33,730 nt of DNA from Utricularia gibba (lineage: Eukaryota > Plantae > Magnoliophyta). The translations under genes were made by a program, and so were the position numbers. The notes under the pieces were generated by a model that had not been told where the DNA came from, did no database searches, and worked only from the letters and a program-made list of their open reading frames with translations. This document shows positions 14,885 to 28,882 of the stretch, in pieces. Positions within the stretch are counted from its first letter, which is position 1. Each line of letters starts with the position of its first letter. Where the stretch lies: NCBI GenBank assembly GCA_002189035.1, contig NEEC01000190.1:1-33730 (forward strand). Reading direction: 5' to 3'.

Positions 14885-16219
14885 ACCCAACTGGTCGGAC
14901 ACACAGAAAACAAAAGAGAAGGCGACAGAAAGTAGCTCACGAGAAGCCGTAAGAATATTGAAAACAAAATTGAGAAACGTGACTGGTATATATCATCCCC
15001 AAGAGTACACACTGCACTGCGATCAGTGGTCCATTAGAAGTCATGGATGAGATCAATCAATGGTGCTGATTTGAAACAGAAGATTGATTCGATCCATAGC
15101 GTCGTATCAGGCAGGATGATTGTTGCATTTCCCATTTAAAAAATATGCTCTGCATTGACTTCTGGAAGGAATTTTGGATTAGGCCTTAGGTGTCAGCACC
15201 ACAATCATTAGGAAAGAATTTTCGGAATGTGCCCGCTTTTCATCTTCAGTCGCGCAAGGCAATCATCACTCTTCTTGGATCCACGTGAGGAGTCCCGAAG
15301 GACACGTGCTCCAGGATCAACGGAGAAGATGAAGATAAATACATATAAATGCATCAAAACAATAGCATAATTCAATAATATATTGTATGTATTTATTAAT
15401 ATGATTTAACATTATTACTCTAAATTTATATTAATTAGTAAAAAATAAAACATAATTAAAAATTATATATTTTTCTTTTCTATACCAAAAGTCTAACCCA
15501 AAGATTTGGGATATCTTATTGTATCAATCATGAGAAACGATAGATATTCTGATTTTTAAAATAATAAATTTATTTTTTAATTGATGATATTAAATATGAA
15601 TATTACATTAAATCATAAAATAAATATAGCAAGTATGAACTATAATTAAGATAACCTTAAAGTGTTGCTTGGTATATAGTTTTTATTATTTAAATATCTA
15701 TATATTAATAATAATATATATTTAATAAACTAGTTTAACAATTGCATGCATATTTTAAAAAATATAAAAATACTTAACGTTTTTGTTGAAAAATTCAAAA
15801 ATTTAATTATTTATTTTAAATATAAAATAAAATAATTTATTTATCTATTTTATTGATAAACTGACTTGATCACTTGTGCATTGTGGTGTTCTTTTTTTAA
15901 AAAAAAATTACTTTATTCATGTTTGATGTTTGTATTTTTTAATCATAAGATTTTCATGATTGTTGGAATATGTAATTTTGGCAGATTTATTGATTTTTTT
16001 CTATTTTTTATTATTTATAATTAATAAAATCATGAAGAAGTAATCTATATTTTAATGAAAACCTGATTATATTTAACACTAATGAAAACTGATTATACTA
16101 TATAATATTTTAATTATATTATATTACATGGCAACATTTACTAGTTTACAGTGATATCCGTATTTCATTACTAATCCTAATGTTTCCATATTTCAGCGGA
16201 AGTGAGGCATCTGAATCCC

Positions 16220-16227
16220 TATAAAAA
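16220..16227 (+). promoter_or_regulatory. TATA box of the PAM2-RING gene (also present in copy B at 25044-25051, minus strand)
   Basis: GGCATCTGAATCCCTATAAAAAG is conserved in both copies, about 70 bp upstream of ATG 16293, within otherwise diverged promoters. Confidence 0.6.
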
Positions 16228-16292
16228 GGGTTGTTTTCGTGAGAGTAATTCTTCAGACTACTCTAACCCCCTCTTGCCGACTTGTTTTTCCA

Positions 16293-17156
16293 ATGGATCG
16301 CCTGGCCGCTCCTTTCGTGTCTGCGCCTTTCCCGATGAATATCCATGCTCCTCCATACGTGCCACTAAGTTTGAGGGAGTTCATACTTCCACAGATTTTC
16401 GAAGCTCCTCAGGGGTTGGATCCCCTGGCCCCTCCTTCCGTGCCTGCGACTTTCCCGATGAATATCCATGCTCCTCCATACGTGCCACTAAGTTTGAGGG
16501 AGTTCATACTTCCACAGATTTTCGAAGCTCCTTACGGGTTGGATCCCCTGGCCCCTCCTGTCGTGCCTGCTCCTTTCCCGATGAATATCCATGCTCCTCC
16601 ATACGTGACATCAAGTTTCACACAGTCCGTCGTTCCACAGATTTCCGAAGCTACTTACGGGTTGAATCCCGACGCTCCACCCTTCGTGCCACGTTTCAGA
16701 GGCTTTTGGTGCTATGTGATGTTTCCTCGTAGTGAGAGTATTTCCTCCGATGAAGAACTGGAGGTTCTGGACAAACCCATCGTTGAGGGCAATGAGGTTG
16801 GTTCGAACCAGAGGAGCAGCGAGACGGAGGACGCGGCCTTCGCGGAGGAGATCGAGGAGGATGAACCTGCGCATGACGAACATCAAGAAAGGTTACTGAG
16901 GAGGTATCAGAGGATACTAATGGAGAGCATGACACTGAAGAACAATTGGGAAATTGAAGCCATTGATGAAGAGGGGCAGTCCAACATCTGCGTCGTTTGT
17001 CAGGAGGGCCTCTGCGACGACGACGGCGGCATGATCGGAATCCTGGACTGCCAACATGAGTTTCATTCCGCATGCATCAAAAAATGGCTGGAAGCTAAGG
17101 ACAAATGCCCCCTCTGTCGCGCAAGAGTCAAGGTTTCTCTGAACCGTCGTCGTTGA
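16293..17156 (+). CDS. Intronless RING-H2 E3 ubiquitin ligase (287 aa) with an N-terminal tandem PAM2-like motif array and an acidic linker; copy A, intact
   Basis: C-terminal CVVCQEGLCDDDGGMIGILDCQHEFHSACIKKWLEAKDKCPLC is a C3H2C3 RING-H2. The N-terminus has LNPDAPPFVP, MNIHAPPYVP, LDPLAPPxVP repeats. ATG 16293 is preferred over the track's GTG 16239 because that GTG is not conserved in copy B. Confidence 0.88.
   Translation: MDRLAAPFVSAPFPMNIHAPPYVPLSLREFILPQIFEAPQGLDPLAPPSVPATFPMNIHAPPYVPLSLREFILPQIFEAPYGLDPLAPPVVPAPFPMNIHAPPYVTSSFTQSVVPQISEATYGLNPDAPPFVPRFRGFWCYVMFPRSESISSDEELEVLDKPIVEGNEVGSNQRSSETEDAAFAEEIEEDEPAHDEHQERLLRRYQRILMESMTLKNNWEIEAIDEEGQSNICVVCQEGLCDDDGGMIGILDCQHEFHSACIKKWLEAKDKCPLCRARVKVSLNRRR
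16329..16697 (+). repeat. Coding tandem repeat, 3 x 123 bp (41 aa)
   Basis: Units start at 16329, 16452 and 16575, each beginning TTCCCGATGAATATCCATGCTCCTCCATACGTG. Units 1 and 2 are nearly identical; unit 3 is diverged. Confidence 0.95.
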
Positions 17157-17413
17157 TCACCTTGTTCATCTGAATGCCCTGTCAGCACCTTTGTATCTTG
17201 GATCCAGATTGCAATGAATATTAGAGAATGTTCACTTTGGCATTGCATTGAATTGTTTCCTTTTTTTATTTTTCAATCCGTTATATTTTTCTCAACGCTT
17301 CGCGGCAACCAGAAGAATCGATGGGGCCAGCTTCGGTTTCCTTTCAGTAGTATAAATTGATTTGACCGAAGGAGTAGTGAAATTAGAACAGGTGAGATAT
17401 TTATCGATCAACT

Positions 17414-17978
17414 ACGGCGGCTTTGAGCGTTTCCCCGGTCTTGACTTCTCCGCGAGACGACGCTACGCAGCTATACCGCGCGTTCAAAGGTGATGCGCAA
17501 CTCTTCTTCTTTAATTCTGCTATCAGGAGATTTTATTTCGTTGTTTGTGTTAGAAATTTGAATGCTGAAGGTCAATTGTGTTGTTCTAGGTTTCGGTTGC
17601 GATAAGGAGGCCGCTATCAACGTTCTTGCTCATCGGGATGCGGCGCAGCGGCAGCTGATCGAAAACGAGTACAGAATGATGTACTCTGAGGAGCTTTCGA
17701 ATCACCTTGCGAAAGAACTCCACGGCGATCTCGAGGTACGGTGATGGAAATGGAATCAGCGACTTTGAATGTGTTTTTTAATCTTGAATCGTTGGTTGAG
17801 TTTTTTTTTTTTTTCGTATTCAGACTTCAGAGAGCGTTTTTGATGTGTTGTCTGATCCGGCTTCGCGTGATGCGATCATTTTGAGGAAGAGTTTATCTGG
17901 TGAAATAATTAATCTAAAAACTGCTACTGAATCATATATATGCTCCCGCAGTTGTGCGCAGCTTCAACTCTTGAAGCA
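17414..17978 (+). pseudogene. Truncated annexin D5 5' fragment (exons 1-3 partial)
   Basis: Homologous to 23531-22975. The start codon is ACG instead of ATG, there is a 1-nt loss in exon 3 (ATGTGTTG vs ATGTGGTTG), and the sequence breaks off at 17978. A TATAAAT box is retained at 17351-17357. Confidence 0.9.
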
Positions 17979-17979
17979 C

Positions 17980-18320
17980 AACATACATTCCATGTGGGAA
18001 ACACAAGATACAGCCGACATGAGGTGGTGGCTATGGAGTGGCTGGTGCAAGAGGTTCTCAATTTCGAGTGCTTCTTACCAACCTCATACACCTTCTTATG
18101 GTAACATACAACTTTAGAATTCATATCGCTACAGTAAATTATAAGTGGGTACGTGCAATTGGGATTGTTCATTTTTCTAACAGGTTCTATTTAAAAGCTG
18201 CTAGAGCGAATGAATCGGTTGAAAAGACCGCCCATTACTTGGCGGTTCTTACACTTCTGGGTCAGCAGCTTCTCTGCTATTGGCCTTCAACTGTTGCTGC
18301 CGGTCTTGTTATTCTTGCCT
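17980..18320 (+). pseudogene. Internal cyclin SDS fragment (exon-intron-exon) fused out of frame to the annexin fragment
   Basis: Matches the reverse complement of 27376-27036: [27 protein letters not shown] | intron | [45 protein letters not shown]. Confidence 0.92.
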
Positions 18321-18929
18321 AAAAAGCAATAGCATTTCATCTTCCCACACCACTCAGGTAACAAATCGATCTAAGTACCCAATCCGGATTAAAGAAAAGC
18401 AACCGATTTTTCAAGAGATTATAAGTAAAACTACCGTAATTAGGGCAGTGGAGGCTTCGAAGCACAGTGATTGTGATCATTGAGGTGGGAACGTTGTACC
18501 CGATGCAATGTAAGGGGCAACCGCGTCACCGGCAGCCCACGAGACTGACCGTGCCGGTGATTAGATGGCCGCCGGCGGTGACTGGGGGATGTAGTGTACC
18601 AAAAATGACGGGTTTATCCATCACCGAGAGACTTCGAAGTAGAAGTACGCGAACTGCAGGGGGATTCAATTTTGACTTCCTGCAATTTTTTATTGGTGAA
18701 GTGTTATTTATATTTCAATAGCATTTAAATAAATGAAAAAAATCCACAAATAGACATATTTAATAAACTTAAAGGTATGAATATCATAGGCCTGATTCGT
18801 GTATCATAAATCGGGACATGAAATGAAACACAACACCACACAAGAGAAGGAAGCAGCAACAGACACTTTCTTTCGACATGAAACGAAACCACAACTTCGA
18901 CGCAGAAAACACCGAGAACAAAACGTGGA

Positions 18930-22102: not shown

Positions 22103-23531
22103 TCAGCGATACGTCGGCCCCAAAAGTGAAAGAAGGAATGCCCTGTAATGGCTGGATGTTTCTGCGTGAACTGCATCATTTAGTGGCGTGTGATACTTCT
22201 TTTGGTACTCTGCTTTTATGTACTGCATGTCGATCTCTGTTCTGGTCACTATGACTCTTGTGAGAGTGGATTCATCAGTTCCAATGCCCTTCATTGAGTG
22301 ATGCAGCAACTGTGGAATTTGCAGGAGAAATTCAGCATCATGAGGAATATATGTAAGATGTATAACACTGAAACACCCTTCAAGCAAGTGCAGAGAGGTG
22401 CAGTTCGGTCAATACCTTTGCGAAGTACTTGGCAGGATTCAGAGCACATTGCAAAATTGTCAATAGGGCGAACTCGAAGAGGCCTGATGTTTCCCTTTTA
22501 ACTGCCTGAAGGAGACGACGTGTTTAATGTGTGGTATATGAATCAATTCGTGGGAGATCGTAACGAGCCTACCTTTTTCAGAGAGCGGCCGTACATTGAG
22601 TGATAAGCAGAAGCCACGGCAGCCAAACGTCCAGGACTAGACTCGGAAAATATGTGTATGAATGTTTTCTCATCGGTTCCCAGCCTCCTTTCTCCAGCTT
22701 TGTAGAGTGACTTCGCATCGTGCTCTGCTCCTGCCCTGTCCACAATTGGACCTTCAAAGCGTACTTTACTGACGTAAGCCAGAAGCAACTGCAGCATTGG
22801 TGATGCTAGGACAATCAGTGAGTGATTATATTACGCAGCACAAGGATAACCATCAAATATGCTTTCATGTTCTGGTATCATAGCAAGACGAGAATAATGA
22901 CCTTTTTCAAATCACCGGTTATTTGACACTCAATGTCTTGTTCAAGATGAAGATGAAATCTAGTAACGTATATCTGCTTCAAGTGTTGAAGCTGCGCAGA
23001 GCTGCGGGAGCATATGACTTCAGTAGCAGTTTTTAGATTAATTATTTCACCAGATAAACTCTTCCTCAAAATGATTGCATCACGCGAGGCCGGATCAGAC
23101 AACCACATCAAAATCGCTCTCTGAATACGAAAAAAAAACTCAACCAACGATTCAAGATAAAAAAAAAAAAAACACATTCAAAGCCGCTGATTCCATTTCC
23201 ATCACCGTACCTCGAGATCGCCGTGGAGTTCTTTCGCAAGGCGATTCGAAAGCTCCTCAGAGTAAATCATTCTGTACTCGTTTTCGATCAGCTGCCGCTG
23301 CGCCGCATCCCGATGAGCAAGAATGTTGATAACGGCCTCCTTATCGCAACCGAAACCTAGAACAACACAATTGATTTTCAGCATCCAAATTTCCAACACA
23401 AACAACAAAATAAAATCTCCTGATAGCAGAATTAAAGAAGAAGAGTTCTGCGTCACCCTTGAAAGCGCGGTATAGCTGCGTAGCGTCGTCTCTAGGAGAA
23501 GTCAAGACCGGGGAACGCTCAAAGTCGCCAT
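22103..23531 (-). CDS. ANN5: Annexin D5-like, full-length, one apparent homopolymer frameshift in exon 1
   Basis: [25 protein letters not shown]|[35 protein letters not shown]|[29 protein letters not shown]|[27 protein letters not shown]..|[46 protein letters not shown]. Confidence 0.93.
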
Positions 23532-23634
23532 AGTTGATCGATAGATATCTCACCTGTTCTAATTTCACAACTCCTCTAGTCAAATCAATTTATAGTACTC
23601 AAAGGAAACCGAAGCTGGGCCCCATCGTTCTTCT

Positions 23635-23990
23635 GGTCGGACGCGTTCGTTAGGATGTGACGTGTAACGCGTACGATAAAAATATAATATCATGGTTTTG
23701 AATTTTCTTCTTTTTTTTTGGCGTACGACATACAAAGGTGCCAAACCATTTGCGAAATATATATTTTATTAAAAATAAATATGTTTATAAAATTTTCAAA
23801 AAAAAACCCCCGTTCAATTTATATTCAGTTTTGCTATCCAATTCTATTCCAAGAAAATTGGAAAAGTTAAAAATACTTTACATTTTTTAAAGCCTAAAAA
23901 AATGTGACCGAAGGAGTTGTTTTAAAAAATAAATTAGGTCGCGAAGCGTTCGTAAGAATGTGACGTGTGACGAGTACGAGAAAAATATAA
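23635..23990. repeat. Pair of about 53-bp imperfect direct repeats (23635-23687, 23937-23990) between the RING gene and the annexin promoter
   Basis: GGTCGGACGCGTTCGTTAGGATGTGACGTGTAACGCGTACGATAAAAATATAA vs GGTCGCGAAGCGTTCGTAAGAATGTGACGTGTGACGAGTACGAGAAAAATATAA. Confidence 0.85.
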
Positions 23991-24124
23991 CGGATTGAAA
24001 AATAAAAAGGAAGCAATTCAATGCGAGTGACATTCTCTAAGATTCATTGGATTCTGATCCAATACAAAGGTGCTGACAGGGCATTCAGATGAACAGAAGG
24101 ATTCAATTCAAGCAAATCAGGTGA

Positions 24125-24974
24125 TCAACGACGACGGTTCAGAGAAACCTTGACTCTTGCGCGACAGAGGGGGCATTTGTCCTTAGCTTCCAGCCATTTT
24201 TTGATGCATGCGGAATGAAACTCATGTTGGCAGTCCAGGATTCCGATCATGCCGCCGTCGTCGTCGCAGAGGCCCTCCTGACAAACGACGCAGATGTTGG
24301 ACTGCCCCTCTTCATCAATGGCTTCAATTTCCCAATTGTTCTTCAGTGTCATGCTCTCCATTAGTATCCTCTGATACCTCCTCAGTAACCTTTCTTGATG
24401 TTCGTCATGCGCAGGTTCATCCTCCTCGATCTCCTCCGCGAAGGCCGCGTCCTCCGTCTCGCTGCTCCTCTGGTTCGAACCAACTCATTGCCCTCAACGA
24501 TGGGTTTGTCCAGAACCTCCAGTTCTTCATCGGAGGAAATACTCTCACTACGAGGAAACATCACATAGCACCAAAAGCCTCTGAAACGTGGCACGAAGGG
24601 TGGAGCGTCGGATTCAACCCGTAAGTAGCTTCGGAAATCTGTGGACGACGGACTGTGTGAAACTTGATGTCACGTATGGAGGAGCATGGATATTCATCGG
24701 GAAAGAGCAGGCACGACAGGGGCCAGGGATCCAACCCGTAAGGAGCTTCGAAAATCTGGAAGTATGAACTCCCTCAAACTTAGTGGCACGTATGGAGGAG
24801 CATGGATATTCATCGGAAAGTCGCAGCACGGAAGGAGGGCCAGGGGATCCAACCCTGAGGAGCTTCGAAAATCTGTGGAAGTATGAACTCCCTCAAACTT
24901 AGTGGCACGTATGGAGGAGCATGGATATTCATCGGGAAAGGCGCAGACACGAAAGGAGCGGCCAGGCGATCCAT
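24125..24974 (-). CDS. PAM2-repeat RING-H2 E3 ligase, copy B; frame broken only by short deletions (probably consensus errors, possibly a pseudogene)
   Basis: 850 nt vs 864 nt in copy A. The 14 missing bases fall in 11 events, all shortening homopolymers or short repeats. No substitutions were found by eye. The C-terminal 78 aa are identical in the ORF track. Confidence 0.8.
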
Positions 24975-26730
24975 TGGAAAAACAAGTCGGCAAGAGGGGG
25001 GCTGTTAGTCTGTGTGAAGAATTACTTTAACGAAAACAACCTCTTTTTATAGGGATTCAGATGCCCTGAAATATGGAAACATTCTGATTTGTAATCAGAT
25101 ATAGATATTACTCTAAACTAGGAAATGTTGCCATGTAACATGATATGATTAAAATATTATATATAAATCAGTGTTAAGTAGGCTGTAGTTCTATATAAAG
25201 ATTAATTATTCATGATTTTATCAAGTATAAATAATAATAAAAAACCATAATTACATATTCCAACATTCATGAAAATCTTCTGATTAACAAATACAATCAT
25301 AAAAAATAAACAAAGGAACTTCAAAGAATATCACAACGCACAGGTGATCAACAATAAATATATCAACAAAATAGATAAATAAAATATTTATTTATATTTA
25401 AAATAAATAATTTAAAATTTGAATTTTTCAACAAAAAAGTGAGTTTTAAAATACTAAACTCAAAGTATTTATATTTATTTTGTATAATACTTATGTATTG
25501 TTAAACTAGTTTATCAAATATATATTATTATTGATATATAGATATTTAAATAATAAAATTATCAACCATACACCACTTTAAGGTTATCTTAGTTATATTT
25601 TATACTTGCTATATTTATTTTATGTTTTAATGTTATAATCATATTTAATATCATCAATTGAAAGATAAAACTTATTATTATAAAAATCAGAATATTTATC
25701 GTTTTTCATGGTTAATATAAAAAGATGTTCCAAATCTTTGGGTTTAGACTTTTTGTGTAGAAGATAAAAATATATAATTTTTAATTATGTTTAAAAATGT
25801 TTTTTATTAATTAATAGACTTTAAATTTATTAAATATGTTTATTTGTAGATTTTTTTCATTTATTTAAATGCTTGCGATATAAATGACGCTTTACCAATA
25901 AAAAATTGCAGTAAGTCAAAATTGAATCCCCTGCAGTTCGCATACTTCTACTTCCGAGTCTCTCGGTGATGGGTAAATCCATCATTTTTCGTACACTACA
26001 TCCCACAGTCACCGCCGGCGGCCATCTAATCACCGGCACAGTCAGTCTCGTCGGCTCCGGTGACACGGTTGCCCCTTCCATTCCGTCTGGTATAACGTTC
26101 CCACCTCCCTGATCACAATCGCTGTGCTTCGAAGTCTAAACTGCCCTAATTACGGTAGTTTTACTTATATTCTCTGACAGATCGGTTGCTTTTTCTTTAA
26201 TATGGATTGGTTAGTTAGATCGATTGTTACCTGCGTGGTGTGGGAAGATGAAATGCTATTGCTTTTTACGGTACTTCGGAGAGCGGGATTTGCGTATGGG
26301 ACTGCAATGTATTTCTGAAGCTTTTGGAGGTACATGTCTTCTTCAACTTGTTGCTATTACCGGATGCCCTATCCGCTGCCGTGGTTCCTCACCATGCTTT
26401 TTAGTGAAATTTTAGAGCATTCAGTTCTTCTCTGATTCGCTTGTAATTTTCAATTTCAGGAATGTTGCAAAACAACCAGCAGAGGGTAGATTAGGTAAAG
26501 AATTCAAACAAAGAAGAGTAATAACATTCCTGGTATCTAATAGCTTCCTTTTCCATATTATTATATTAGCTAAAGAATGTGCTTATGGATTGCATATCAT
26601 CTTTAAATGAATCGCCAACGGACATTTTATGATCGTTGCTTCCTACACATAAAAAGAATGGCAGATGGTGTGTACCTGGTCCCGAAACCAGTCTCATGAA
26701 TGCCGTGGAAAGATGGAAACGCACTGTCAA

Positions 26731-28882
26731 TCAGATGTACTTCACCAACCACTCCATGCTCTGTGTAACAATCTTAAGTTAAGCCATTTGGATTGTGAGC
26801 ATACCAGCAAAGAATGACGTATAAACTGGATCATTGATTACCTTTATGCAGTTAGGTAGATCATCATCTTTCTGTCTTGCATGAATCTGTATTGCCAGTT
26901 TGAAAGTTTAGAAAACATTTACGGTTTCATCTCCGAAGTTGTGCTTTCTCTTAAATTGATGTGCGAAATCACAATATTGTATGGTGCGTACCGCTGTTAC
27001 CCTGTTGCATGATGCATCTTGTTTCATGGCAATTGAGGCAAGGATAACAAGACCGGCAGCAACAGTAGAAGGCCAATAGCAGAGAAGCTGCTGACCCAGA
27101 AGTGTAAGAACCGCCAAGTAATGGGCGGTCTTTTCAACCGATTCATTCGCTCTAGCAGCTTTTAAATAGAACCTGTTACACAAATGAACAATCCCAATTG
27201 CACGTAGCCACTTATAATTTACTGTAGCGATATGAATTCTAAAGTTGTACGTTACCATAAGAAGGTGTATGAGGTTGGTAAGAAGCACTCGAAATTGAGA
27301 ACCTCTTGCACCAGCCACTCCATAGCCACCACCTCACATCGGCTGTATCTTGTGTTTCCCACATGGAATGTATGTTTCCTTACGCTGCCATTTATCACAC
27401 AAACTAACCATTCAACAGTGACATGATCCACCAAATTTGGCCAACGTAAATGCCTAGTACCAGTTGTAGGGCTGATTTTCTTCTAATCTGATTGCTAGAG
27501 TGAGGCATGCAATGGCAGCGATTTGAAGATTTCTCACACTTTTGAAGTATCCTTTGCTAAGGAATCTATCAAGTAGATTGACCCCTAAAAATATGGTCTC
27601 CTTTTGAAGCTCCTGGAGGGTAGCTTGCTGAAAGAACAAATTAAAAAAAAAAAAAAAAACTTCAGTTGGATCAGGAAACAATATGAAAAAACCTACAATC
27701 AGAAGTAGAGTTAGCTTCAGTGACCTCAACAATCCAATGAACCATGTGCAGCCGCTGTTCGACGATGAATTTACCGCATTCAAGTGCGCTGTACTTCTCT
27801 ACGTAGTTGTGAACATATCTTTTCCTCCTCTCCCGTTTCCTAATCATTCTGTATTGTTCTTCCTCCTCTACATCTTCTAGGCCCAGATCCTAGATTCCCG
27901 AATTGCAAATAATTTTCTTATGAAGAAGATCAATATCTGCTAACGAGATCAAAAACAGAGTCCTTACATCCATATGCAGAGAATCATGCTGTTCACTTTC
28001 TTGTGAAGCGAAATTAGATCTATTGAACTGCGTTTTAAACAGCATGAGCATTTCATAAGTCGGTGAAGAACTCTCTGAAGACTTTTCAGAAAACTGACTT
28101 CCAGAAGCATAACTCCAAAATGACGGCGTATAATCTGAACTATCGAAACATGATTCCGATGAAAGATTTGGTATCTTCGACGATAAGGTGCTGTTCTCAT
28201 TCTCAGCCTCATCGGCACTGTAAATTCCTTCATTGGGCAAGTTCTCAGAGCAAGCCAAATCAAGGTTGAATCCAACAATACCTTGAATTCTTGTATCTTC
28301 GCCCGTCACAGTTTCACCGATTCTGGATACCGCGTCGTTACCAAGTGAATTCTCATTTTCAGAATCCGAATCATTAAATTCCCGATATGAATCGTTCTGA
28401 ACTTCAACGATGATCCGATTTTCCGTTTCCGTTCCCGACGTGACGTCTCCGACGGAGCATGGGACACTTCAGATTTCGAAAGCTGCTCTATTGCGCATCA
28501 GATTCGCTCACATCCTCATTCTTAAGCTTCAATGAAAATTCTAGGATTGATCTAGAATGCGATTCCAGGCACGAATTCTACTAGCGACGATTGATCGCGC
28601 ACCCGGTTCTCGTAGCACTTTATCCTGGAGTAAGATCGCGTAATGAGTCGAGGACACCGATCATCTCTTCGGCGATACACTCGATACGCAGGATACTTCG
28701 CTTACTTCCGTAGCATGCGAATTGATGCCAGCATTTCGAACGATGGGCGCAATGCGAAACTGCCTCCGGCGACGGACGGATCGGAGGCGTTTCGTGGTGA
28801 AACTCAGAAATTGATTTGATTTGACTCTTCTTTGTTTCACAGTAGTCGTAGTCGCAGTCTCTGTGAGGAGCTTGCGTTTCAT
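26731..28882 (-). CDS. SDS: Cyclin SDS (SOLO DANCERS), meiotic cyclin; apparent frameshifts in exon 1
   Basis: N-terminus [30 protein letters not shown]; LITRSYSR; [37 protein letters not shown]; cyclin box [49 protein letters not shown]; C-terminus [15 protein letters not shown]|SMEWLVKYI*. An alternative upstream in-frame ATG lies at 28942. Confidence 0.92.

Follow-up and report, generated by a model that had tools for sequence, protein, structure and literature searches.

Structure of a repeat-bearing RING-H2 gene

We analysed a stretch of 33,730 nucleotides (nt) of Utricularia gibba DNA (contig NEEC01000190.1, positions 1-33730, hereafter the window), in which a ubiquitin ligase gene with an array of PAM2-like motifs, candidate docking sites for the poly(A)-binding protein (PABP) MLLE domain, had been predicted. 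The gene, here called copy A, is an uninterrupted open reading frame (ORF) of 287 codons plus a stop, without an intron, at 16293-17156 of the forward strand, and its single-exon coding sequence (CDS) encodes a 287-amino-acid (aa) protein consisting of the PAM2-like array, an acidic linker and a C-terminal RING-H2 finger. The CDS showed zero mismatches to assembled DNA contigs of independent public runs with the same organism label and of one run labelled 'plant metagenome'. The exactly matching contigs span 16013-16361, 16250-16439, 16456-16558, 16578-16828 and 16584-17162 and cover nearly the whole CDS; the intact frame is therefore genuine and not an assembly accident. In addition, a paralogue contig from an RNA library (run X8) starts with a 5' leader followed by ATG-GAT in the same frame as 16293 (unmatched contig end at 16451); this lends support to a gene with one exon. 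At 16220-16227 (forward strand), 66 nt 5' of the ATG, a TATA-like box (tataaaaa) lies inside a block conserved between copy A and a second, inverted copy in the window, and may act as the promoter. A second forward frame at 16202-16732 (176 aa) is likewise open across the repeat, as expected for a low-complexity tandem repeat, and stops short of the RING.

All seven decapeptides quoted in the original prediction are present in the 287-aa ORF in the even alternation described, and they derive from a 123-nt (41-aa) tandem repeat present 3.1 times at 16294-16670 (Tandem Repeats Finder, 90% matches, score 593). A separate repeat search likewise returned three in-register copies of the 123-nt unit. 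In each unit, four residues separate an 'a' motif (L-D/N-P-x-A-P-P-x-V-P) from a 'b' motif (MNIHAPPYVP), after which comes a hydrophobic spacer of 17 residues; the decapeptides start at residues 1, 15, 42, 56, 83, 97 and 124. Their regular alternation is due to the tandem repetition of this two-motif unit, so that the array represents 3.1 copies of one unit and not seven independent origins. On the forward strand, motif 1 (MDRLAAPFVS, 16293-16322) forms the extreme N-terminus, followed by motif 2 (MNIHAPPYVP, 'b' type, 16335-16364), motif 3 (LDPLAPPSVP, 'a' type, 16416-16445), motif 4 (MNIHAPPYVP, 'b' type, 16458-16487), motif 5 (LDPLAPPVVP, 'a' type, 16539-16568), motif 6 (MNIHAPPYVT, 'b' type, 16581-16610) and motif 7 (LNPDAPPFVP, 16662-16691). 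Proline makes up 23% of residues 1-135, and this N-terminal region probably has no fixed fold. AlphaFold2 run without an alignment gave a mean predicted local distance difference test score of 37.8, with the RING below 50 as well, and was uninformative on order or disorder.

The acidic linker and C3H2C3 RING that had been predicted to follow the array were both found. The Ser/Glu-rich linker (residues 136-230, 16698-16982, forward strand) carries a net charge of -17 and contains most of the substitutions and indels that separate the paralogues. In the RING-H2 finger (residues 232-276, 16986-17120, forward strand), all eight zinc ligands are present at canonical spacing (C233, C236, C253, H255, H258, C261, C272 and C275), and both the Pfam model zf-RING_2 (6.9e-11, 42.7 bits, cut-off 27.3) and the model zf-rbx1 (1.2e-10, 41.8 bits, cut-off 31) matched. 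The residues that contact the ubiquitin-conjugating enzyme (E2) are retained as in RNF38, namely Val234 after Cys1, Trp265 in the helix and Pro273 after Cys7, and Arg276 follows Cys8. The best matches among solved structures were RNF38 (5.7e-11), ARK2C/RNF165, RLIM and Arkadia, with E values from 5.7e-11 to 2e-7. The RING-H2 fingers of RNF38, Arkadia, ARK2C and RLIM are active monomeric ubiquitin ligase (E3) domains. They share with the window protein the ligand pattern and the C-P-x-C-R ending, but the likeness is confined to the finger of about 55 residues, and the regions by which these animal proteins bind substrates are different. Within the finger, paralogues detected in runs X1, X7 and X8 are 6 nt shorter at 17015, in a GAC-GAC-GAC run; the loss shortens an Asp tract in the loop between zinc ligands 2 and 3 and is thus an in-frame length change.

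PAM2 likeness of the seven motifs

The strongest PAM2 candidate in the protein is motif 7. A Pfam scan of the whole protein with PF07145, a model of 18 positions with a gathering cut-off of 20 bits, gave one PAM2 match, at residues 121-135 (22.4 bits), and motif 7 scanned as an isolated 21-aa peptide reached 29.1 bits (E 6.1e-7). The earlier comparison of LNPDAPPFVP with plant PAM2 was thereby borne out, this motif being a true PAM2 by the threshold of Pfam. The claim of about seven PAM2-like motifs went too far as worded: motif 7 lies above the Pfam cut-off, whereas each of motifs 1-6, scanned alone as a 20-21-aa peptide, gave no Pfam PAM2 match at E<=10. ERD15 probably likewise carries a motif of the LNPxAPxFxP type. 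The further, tentative proposal that MNIHAPPYVP resembles a Tyr-type variant found in CID5/CID6 has no corresponding statement in the text of PMC4574140.

The structure-based PAM2 pattern reads Phi3-x-(P/V)5-x-A7-x-x-F10-x-P12, where position 10 is the most important single residue (PMC2854688), and Trp is accepted at this position in LARP4/4B (PMC7356810). Motifs were graded by the pattern in these two papers, that is, a hydrophobic residue at position 3, Pro or Val (or Thr) at 5, Ala7, Phe or Trp at 10 and Pro12. Motif 7 alone among the seven satisfied the full pattern, and all six of its graded positions agree with the consensus. The 'b' motifs 2 and 4 keep positions 3 (Met), 7 and 12 and carry Ile5 and Tyr10; motif 6 is the same except for Thr12. 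Motif 1 retains Phe10 and is off the pattern at positions 5 and 12, lacking Asn4, Pro/Val5 and Pro12, while motifs 3 and 5 have Ser and Val, respectively, in place of an aromatic residue at position 10. Graded in this way, the array comprises one strong candidate site, three conservative variants and three sites that appear weakened.

Failure to match the Pfam model need not mean that a motif is without function, because the makorin PAM2, which is off-consensus and needs a custom model, is still required for PABP binding. A feature search of the ESM Atlas with residues 1-140 ranked a PAM2 cluster first with a weak score of 0.49, which we take as a lead and not as evidence, and with the whole protein the same search returned generic RING clusters with scores of up to 0.88. 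A sequence search of the PDB with a PAM2 peptide gave chance matches only, in a library without chains shorter than 20 residues. We also considered the repeats as ligands of class-I WW domains; this was ruled out, as no PPxY occurs in the protein.

Relatives, paralogues and constraint

Homologue searches recovered the finger and not the array. In a word-indexed search of 5.8 billion protein clusters, the full-length protein had no match at E<=1e-3 and residues 1-140 had none at E<=10, while residues 116-287 retrieved four weak RING-only matches, of which none (0/4) carried PF07145. An exhaustive phmmer search of 1.84 billion representatives gave 6149 matches, and the best 150 of these align only at residues ~190-285. 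Top matches aligning over more than one stretch were multi-RING proteins and not PAM2 arrays, and a loose PAM2 pattern, applied as a regular expression, was found in 0 of the best 150 of the 6149 relatives. The exact protein sequence had no record in public assemblies. In the databases searched, the N-terminus and the overall architecture thus appear to be without a relative outside the source genome, and the search for the same architecture elsewhere in plants that had been proposed as a check returned none. The assertion that no plant RING-H2 family with a tandem PAM2 array is known agrees with this outcome and with the covered portions of two plant surveys discussed below.

The RING begins C-V-V-C-Q-E-G-L-C, and the signature C-x-V-C-Q-D/E-x-L-C is common to 16 of the best 150 matches. 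Named carriers are proteins of Paulownia (KAI3454604), Buddleja (KAG8382509) and Sesamum (KAK4430340), and some of the carriers are annotated as MBR2. These Lamiales MBR2-like proteins possess the nearest RINGs among the best 150 (47-61% identity over residues ~193-278) and, like the window protein, have a C-terminal finger and a size of about 200-290 aa. In contrast, their N-termini are unrelated to that of the window protein, and their G-L-S-E motif before the finger is missing from it. Since the nearest fingers with the unusual signature are in Lamiales, the RING derives from a Lamiales-type MBR2-like clade.

The family is multi-copy in the genome. The members seen in DNA and RNA contigs variously lack the 6 nt at 17015, one repeat unit or a stretch of 42 nt, or have 3' untranslated regions (UTRs) that differ from position 17165 on. 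The 'plant metagenome' run (X2) contained a DNA contig with a precise 123-nt skip at 16556-16680, equal to one repeat unit, and the repeat number therefore differs among copies or individuals. Sequence related to 16799-16978 was found in runs X1, X4 and X8, including an RNA library; it covers the acidic-linker segment only, at ~86% identity, with both flanks unrelated, which suggests that pieces of the RING gene have been reused in a modular fashion. A 781-nt contig from the RNA library X7 represents an in-frame paralogue, ~95% identical over 16452-17165, in which the indels add up to 9 and 6 nt, both divisible by three. In the paralogue in the RNA library X8, a deletion of 80 nt breaks the frame and a stop codon is present, and motif 6 is removed by a 42-nt in-frame deletion. 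At 95% likeness, no RNA contig of exact copy A was found in runs X7 and X8, and at 85% likeness the X7 and X8 RNA contigs were paralogues whose 3' UTR differs from that of copy A. The transcript check therefore came out in favour of the family, with paralogues in contigs of two RNA libraries, and not of the exact copy A, bearing in mind that RNA-library contigs may stem from contaminating DNA. Copy A itself may nevertheless be expressed. Taken together, the gene family is young, lineage-restricted and partly decaying.

Differences among the repeat units and paralogues are unevenly distributed. Repeat units 2 and 3 differ at 2 of 20 residues within motifs and at 10 of 21 outside them (Fisher p=0.015). 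In the array of the X7 paralogue, the four synonymous changes all lie within motifs, the seven spacer codons that changed all did so non-synonymously (p=0.021), and within motifs V90F and T106P are the only amino-acid changes. The first gives motif 5 a Phe10 (GTC to TTC at 16560) and the second gives motif 6 a Pro12, so that both motifs stand nearer to the PAM2 consensus in the paralogue; motif 4 is the same in X7 as in copy A. In the X8 paralogue, one of nine amino-acid changes falls in a motif (p=0.03), and it is again V90F. Motif 7 has no amino-acid change in either. Motif cores thus change less than spacers, both between units and in comparison with two paralogues (p about 0.015-0.03), although these statistics rest on small counts from sequences that are kin by recent duplication. 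Over the compared CDS, X7 shows 21 non-synonymous changes at 551 sites and 7 synonymous changes at 151 sites, giving a dN/dS of ~0.8 (computed from the 28 listed of 32 substitutions). The pattern is consistent with a disordered protein that depends on its short motifs and zinc ligands alone; drift towards decay is compatible with it as well.

The window contains an inverted second copy of the CDS, copy B, at 24125-24974 of the reverse strand, which is out of frame owing to the loss of 14 bases in 10 places. All losses lie between the equivalents of 16412 and 16796, mostly in short single-base runs. Copies A and B are identical at 847 of 850 aligned bases, and the three mismatches flank a 4-nt gap, so that there are no true substitutions, whereas their flanks are only 87-90% identical. 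None of the copy B deletions was present in DNA contigs of three runs aligned to copy A. Deletions without substitutions resemble a long-read consensus left unpolished more than they do decay. Should the losses be errors, there would be two identical inverted genes in the genome, implying recent gene conversion. The copies belong to an inverted segmental duplication of changed order, comprising 15495-18662 and 23019-27376, in which 15495-17931 maps colinearly, reversed, to 25744-23019, and 17980-18662 maps to the opposite side, at 27376-25928. The duplication includes the RING gene together with fragments of an annexin gene (17562-17741) and a cyclin gene (Cyclin_C, 26911-27318). Across the window (1-33730), plant nuclear genes are tightly spaced, namely those for annexin, cyclin, ribose-5-phosphate isomerase, PhyH and aspartate-semialdehyde dehydrogenase, and a WOX-like homeobox fragment was noted by eye.

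Candidate function and comparison with known PABP-docking systems

We propose, at roughly even confidence and from sequence comparison, that copy A belongs, with its frame intact, to a young multi-copy family and encodes a RING-H2 ligase that docks on PABP by PAM2. An MBR2-like C-terminal RING-H2 would have gained a new proline-rich N-terminus, in which the 41-aa unit was amplified 3.1 times. The canonical motif LNPDAPPFVP would dock the protein on the MLLE domain of PABP, and the variant motifs could add weak extra contacts that raise the local concentration or promote rebinding on poly(A) tails that PABP coats. The RING could then recruit an E2 and ubiquitinate PABP or a neighbouring protein of the messenger ribonucleoprotein (mRNP).

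Several observations weigh against this proposal, and most of them speak for its main rival, that copy A is a recent, effectively neutral birth-and-death copy whose ORF is intact only by youth and which has no maintained function. We rank the docking ligase above this explanation, which we consider rather doubtful. Differences between the repeat units are almost wholly non-synonymous (non-synonymous to synonymous 7:0, 16:1 and 12:1 for the unit pairs), and the dN/dS against the in-frame X7 paralogue is near neutral. Phe10 has been lost twice in copy A by single-base changes (TTC to TCC and TTC to GTC), which argues against selection on every site. The X8 paralogue, although transcribed, is broken, a copy A transcript is missing from the RNA contigs, and no relative beyond the source genome emerged from the 1.84 billion representatives. 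With the family confined to one genome in those databases and nearly neutral, its physiological weight may be small. Neutral drift accounts less well for the sparing of motif cores, of the canonical PAM2 motif and of all RING ligands while spacers and linker vary, and the X7 indels keep the frame. The TATA-like box and 5' region are also retained between copies A and B.

The weakness of six of the seven motifs could instead mean that a working RING-H2 ligase binds a partner other than PABP through its proline-rich repeats, the PAM2 likeness being incidental except perhaps in the last motif. The core A-P-P-x-V-P could suit other proline-recognition modules, six motifs fail the Pfam model, two of these have no aromatic residue at position 10 at all, and the best-conserved 'b' motif carries Tyr10 and not Phe or Trp, a Tyr for which no function is documented in PMC7356810, PMC2854688 or PMC4574140. 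We regard this as unlikely, because four of the seven motifs (five in paralogues) retain the spacing of hydrophobic 3, Ala7, aromatic 10 and Pro12, motif 7 reaches 29 bits on a model of just 18 positions, the missing PPxY removes class-I WW domains as partners, and the PAM2 cluster ranked first, if weakly, for residues 1-140 in the ESM Atlas. It is highly improbable that the gene is a product of misassembly or of an arbitrary choice of frame across a repeat. The alternative frame at 16202-16732 is also open through the repeat and the neighbouring copy B has base losses of long-read type, but copy A agrees exactly with short-read contigs from independent runs, the RING is reached by the 16293 frame only, and a paralogue contig has the same ATG and frame.

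If the docking-ligase interpretation is correct, the protein would be the first plant ligase to dock directly on the MLLE domain of PABP. We found no relevant literature describing a Utricularia RING family or a plant PAM2-bearing E3. Plant CID proteins, which are defined by a PAM2 that binds the MLLE domain of PABP, form four classes, A-D, none of which has a RING (PMC4574140). The domains of these classes are ERD15-type PAE1/acidic/TF; Lsm plus LsmAD; CUE with or without SMR; and two RRMs (PMC4574140). ERD15-type members, such as ERD15/CID1, resemble the window protein in that an acidic region comes after an N-terminal PAM2, and CID3/4 have two tandem PAM2 reiterations. The window protein stands outside these classes, since Pfam shows RING-type families and PAM2 only and no CID class domain, and if it binds MLLE it would constitute a fifth, in which copy number and motif number would still be evolving. 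PAM2, PABP and MLLE are not mentioned in the covered text and supplements of a paper on the plant RING repertoire (PMC6118397). A ubiquitin ligase that docks on PABP by a PAM2 is thus missing from the covered portions of both plant surveys, that of PABP partners (PMC4574140) and that of the RING repertoire (PMC6118397).

The nearest functional counterparts are the animal makorins, MKRN1 and MKRN3, which combine a PAM2 and a RING in one polypeptide, as is proposed for the window protein. This precedent, cited in the original prediction for Makorin-1, is valid: the PAM2 of MKRN1 binds PABPC1/4 and is needed for that binding and for residence on the mRNP, and MKRN1 serves as an E3 for proteins of mRNPs and ribosomes. 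MKRN3 ubiquitinates PABPC1/3/4, according to the covered portions of PMC8053111 and PMC8217967. Animal makorins connect PABP with ribosome quality control and with the translational control of particular mRNAs. They have one off-consensus PAM2, RNA-binding C3H zinc fingers and an internal C3HC4 RING, whereas the window protein has no CCCH finger in Pfam, a C-terminal RING-H2 and a tandem motif array. No sequence kinship between the two extends beyond the generic RING, and the window protein would be makorin-like in logic without being a member of the family. It is conceivable, and we advance it tentatively, that the makorin solution was reached independently in a lineage of carnivorous plants, probably Lentibulariaceae, by fusion of an MBR2-like RING-H2 to PAM2 and tandem amplification of the motif, with occupancy set by the number of PABP molecules per poly(A) tail. 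If so, this would be a clean case of the convergent assembly of a docking motif and a catalytic domain from unrelated parts.

For the multiplicity of motifs, the closest parallel is Upa2 of Ustilago maydis, whose four PAM2 motifs are exceptional according to its authors, most proteins having one and eRF3 and Tob two. Several PAM2 motifs in one protein provide Upa2 with a platform for several PABP molecules, as proposed for the window protein. All four motifs of Upa2 are dispensable for the phenotype tested, a point to be added to those against a contribution of the array. Upa2, a scaffold of 2121 aa, lacks a ligase domain, and its motifs are dispersed and not encoded by a tandem DNA repeat. 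The tandem array described here would offer a natural series on whether binding to tails coated with PABP is tuned by how many PAM2 sites are present. By analogy with these two systems, the window protein appears to join the makorin-like logic of PAM2 plus RING and the multivalency of Upa2 on a different scaffold.

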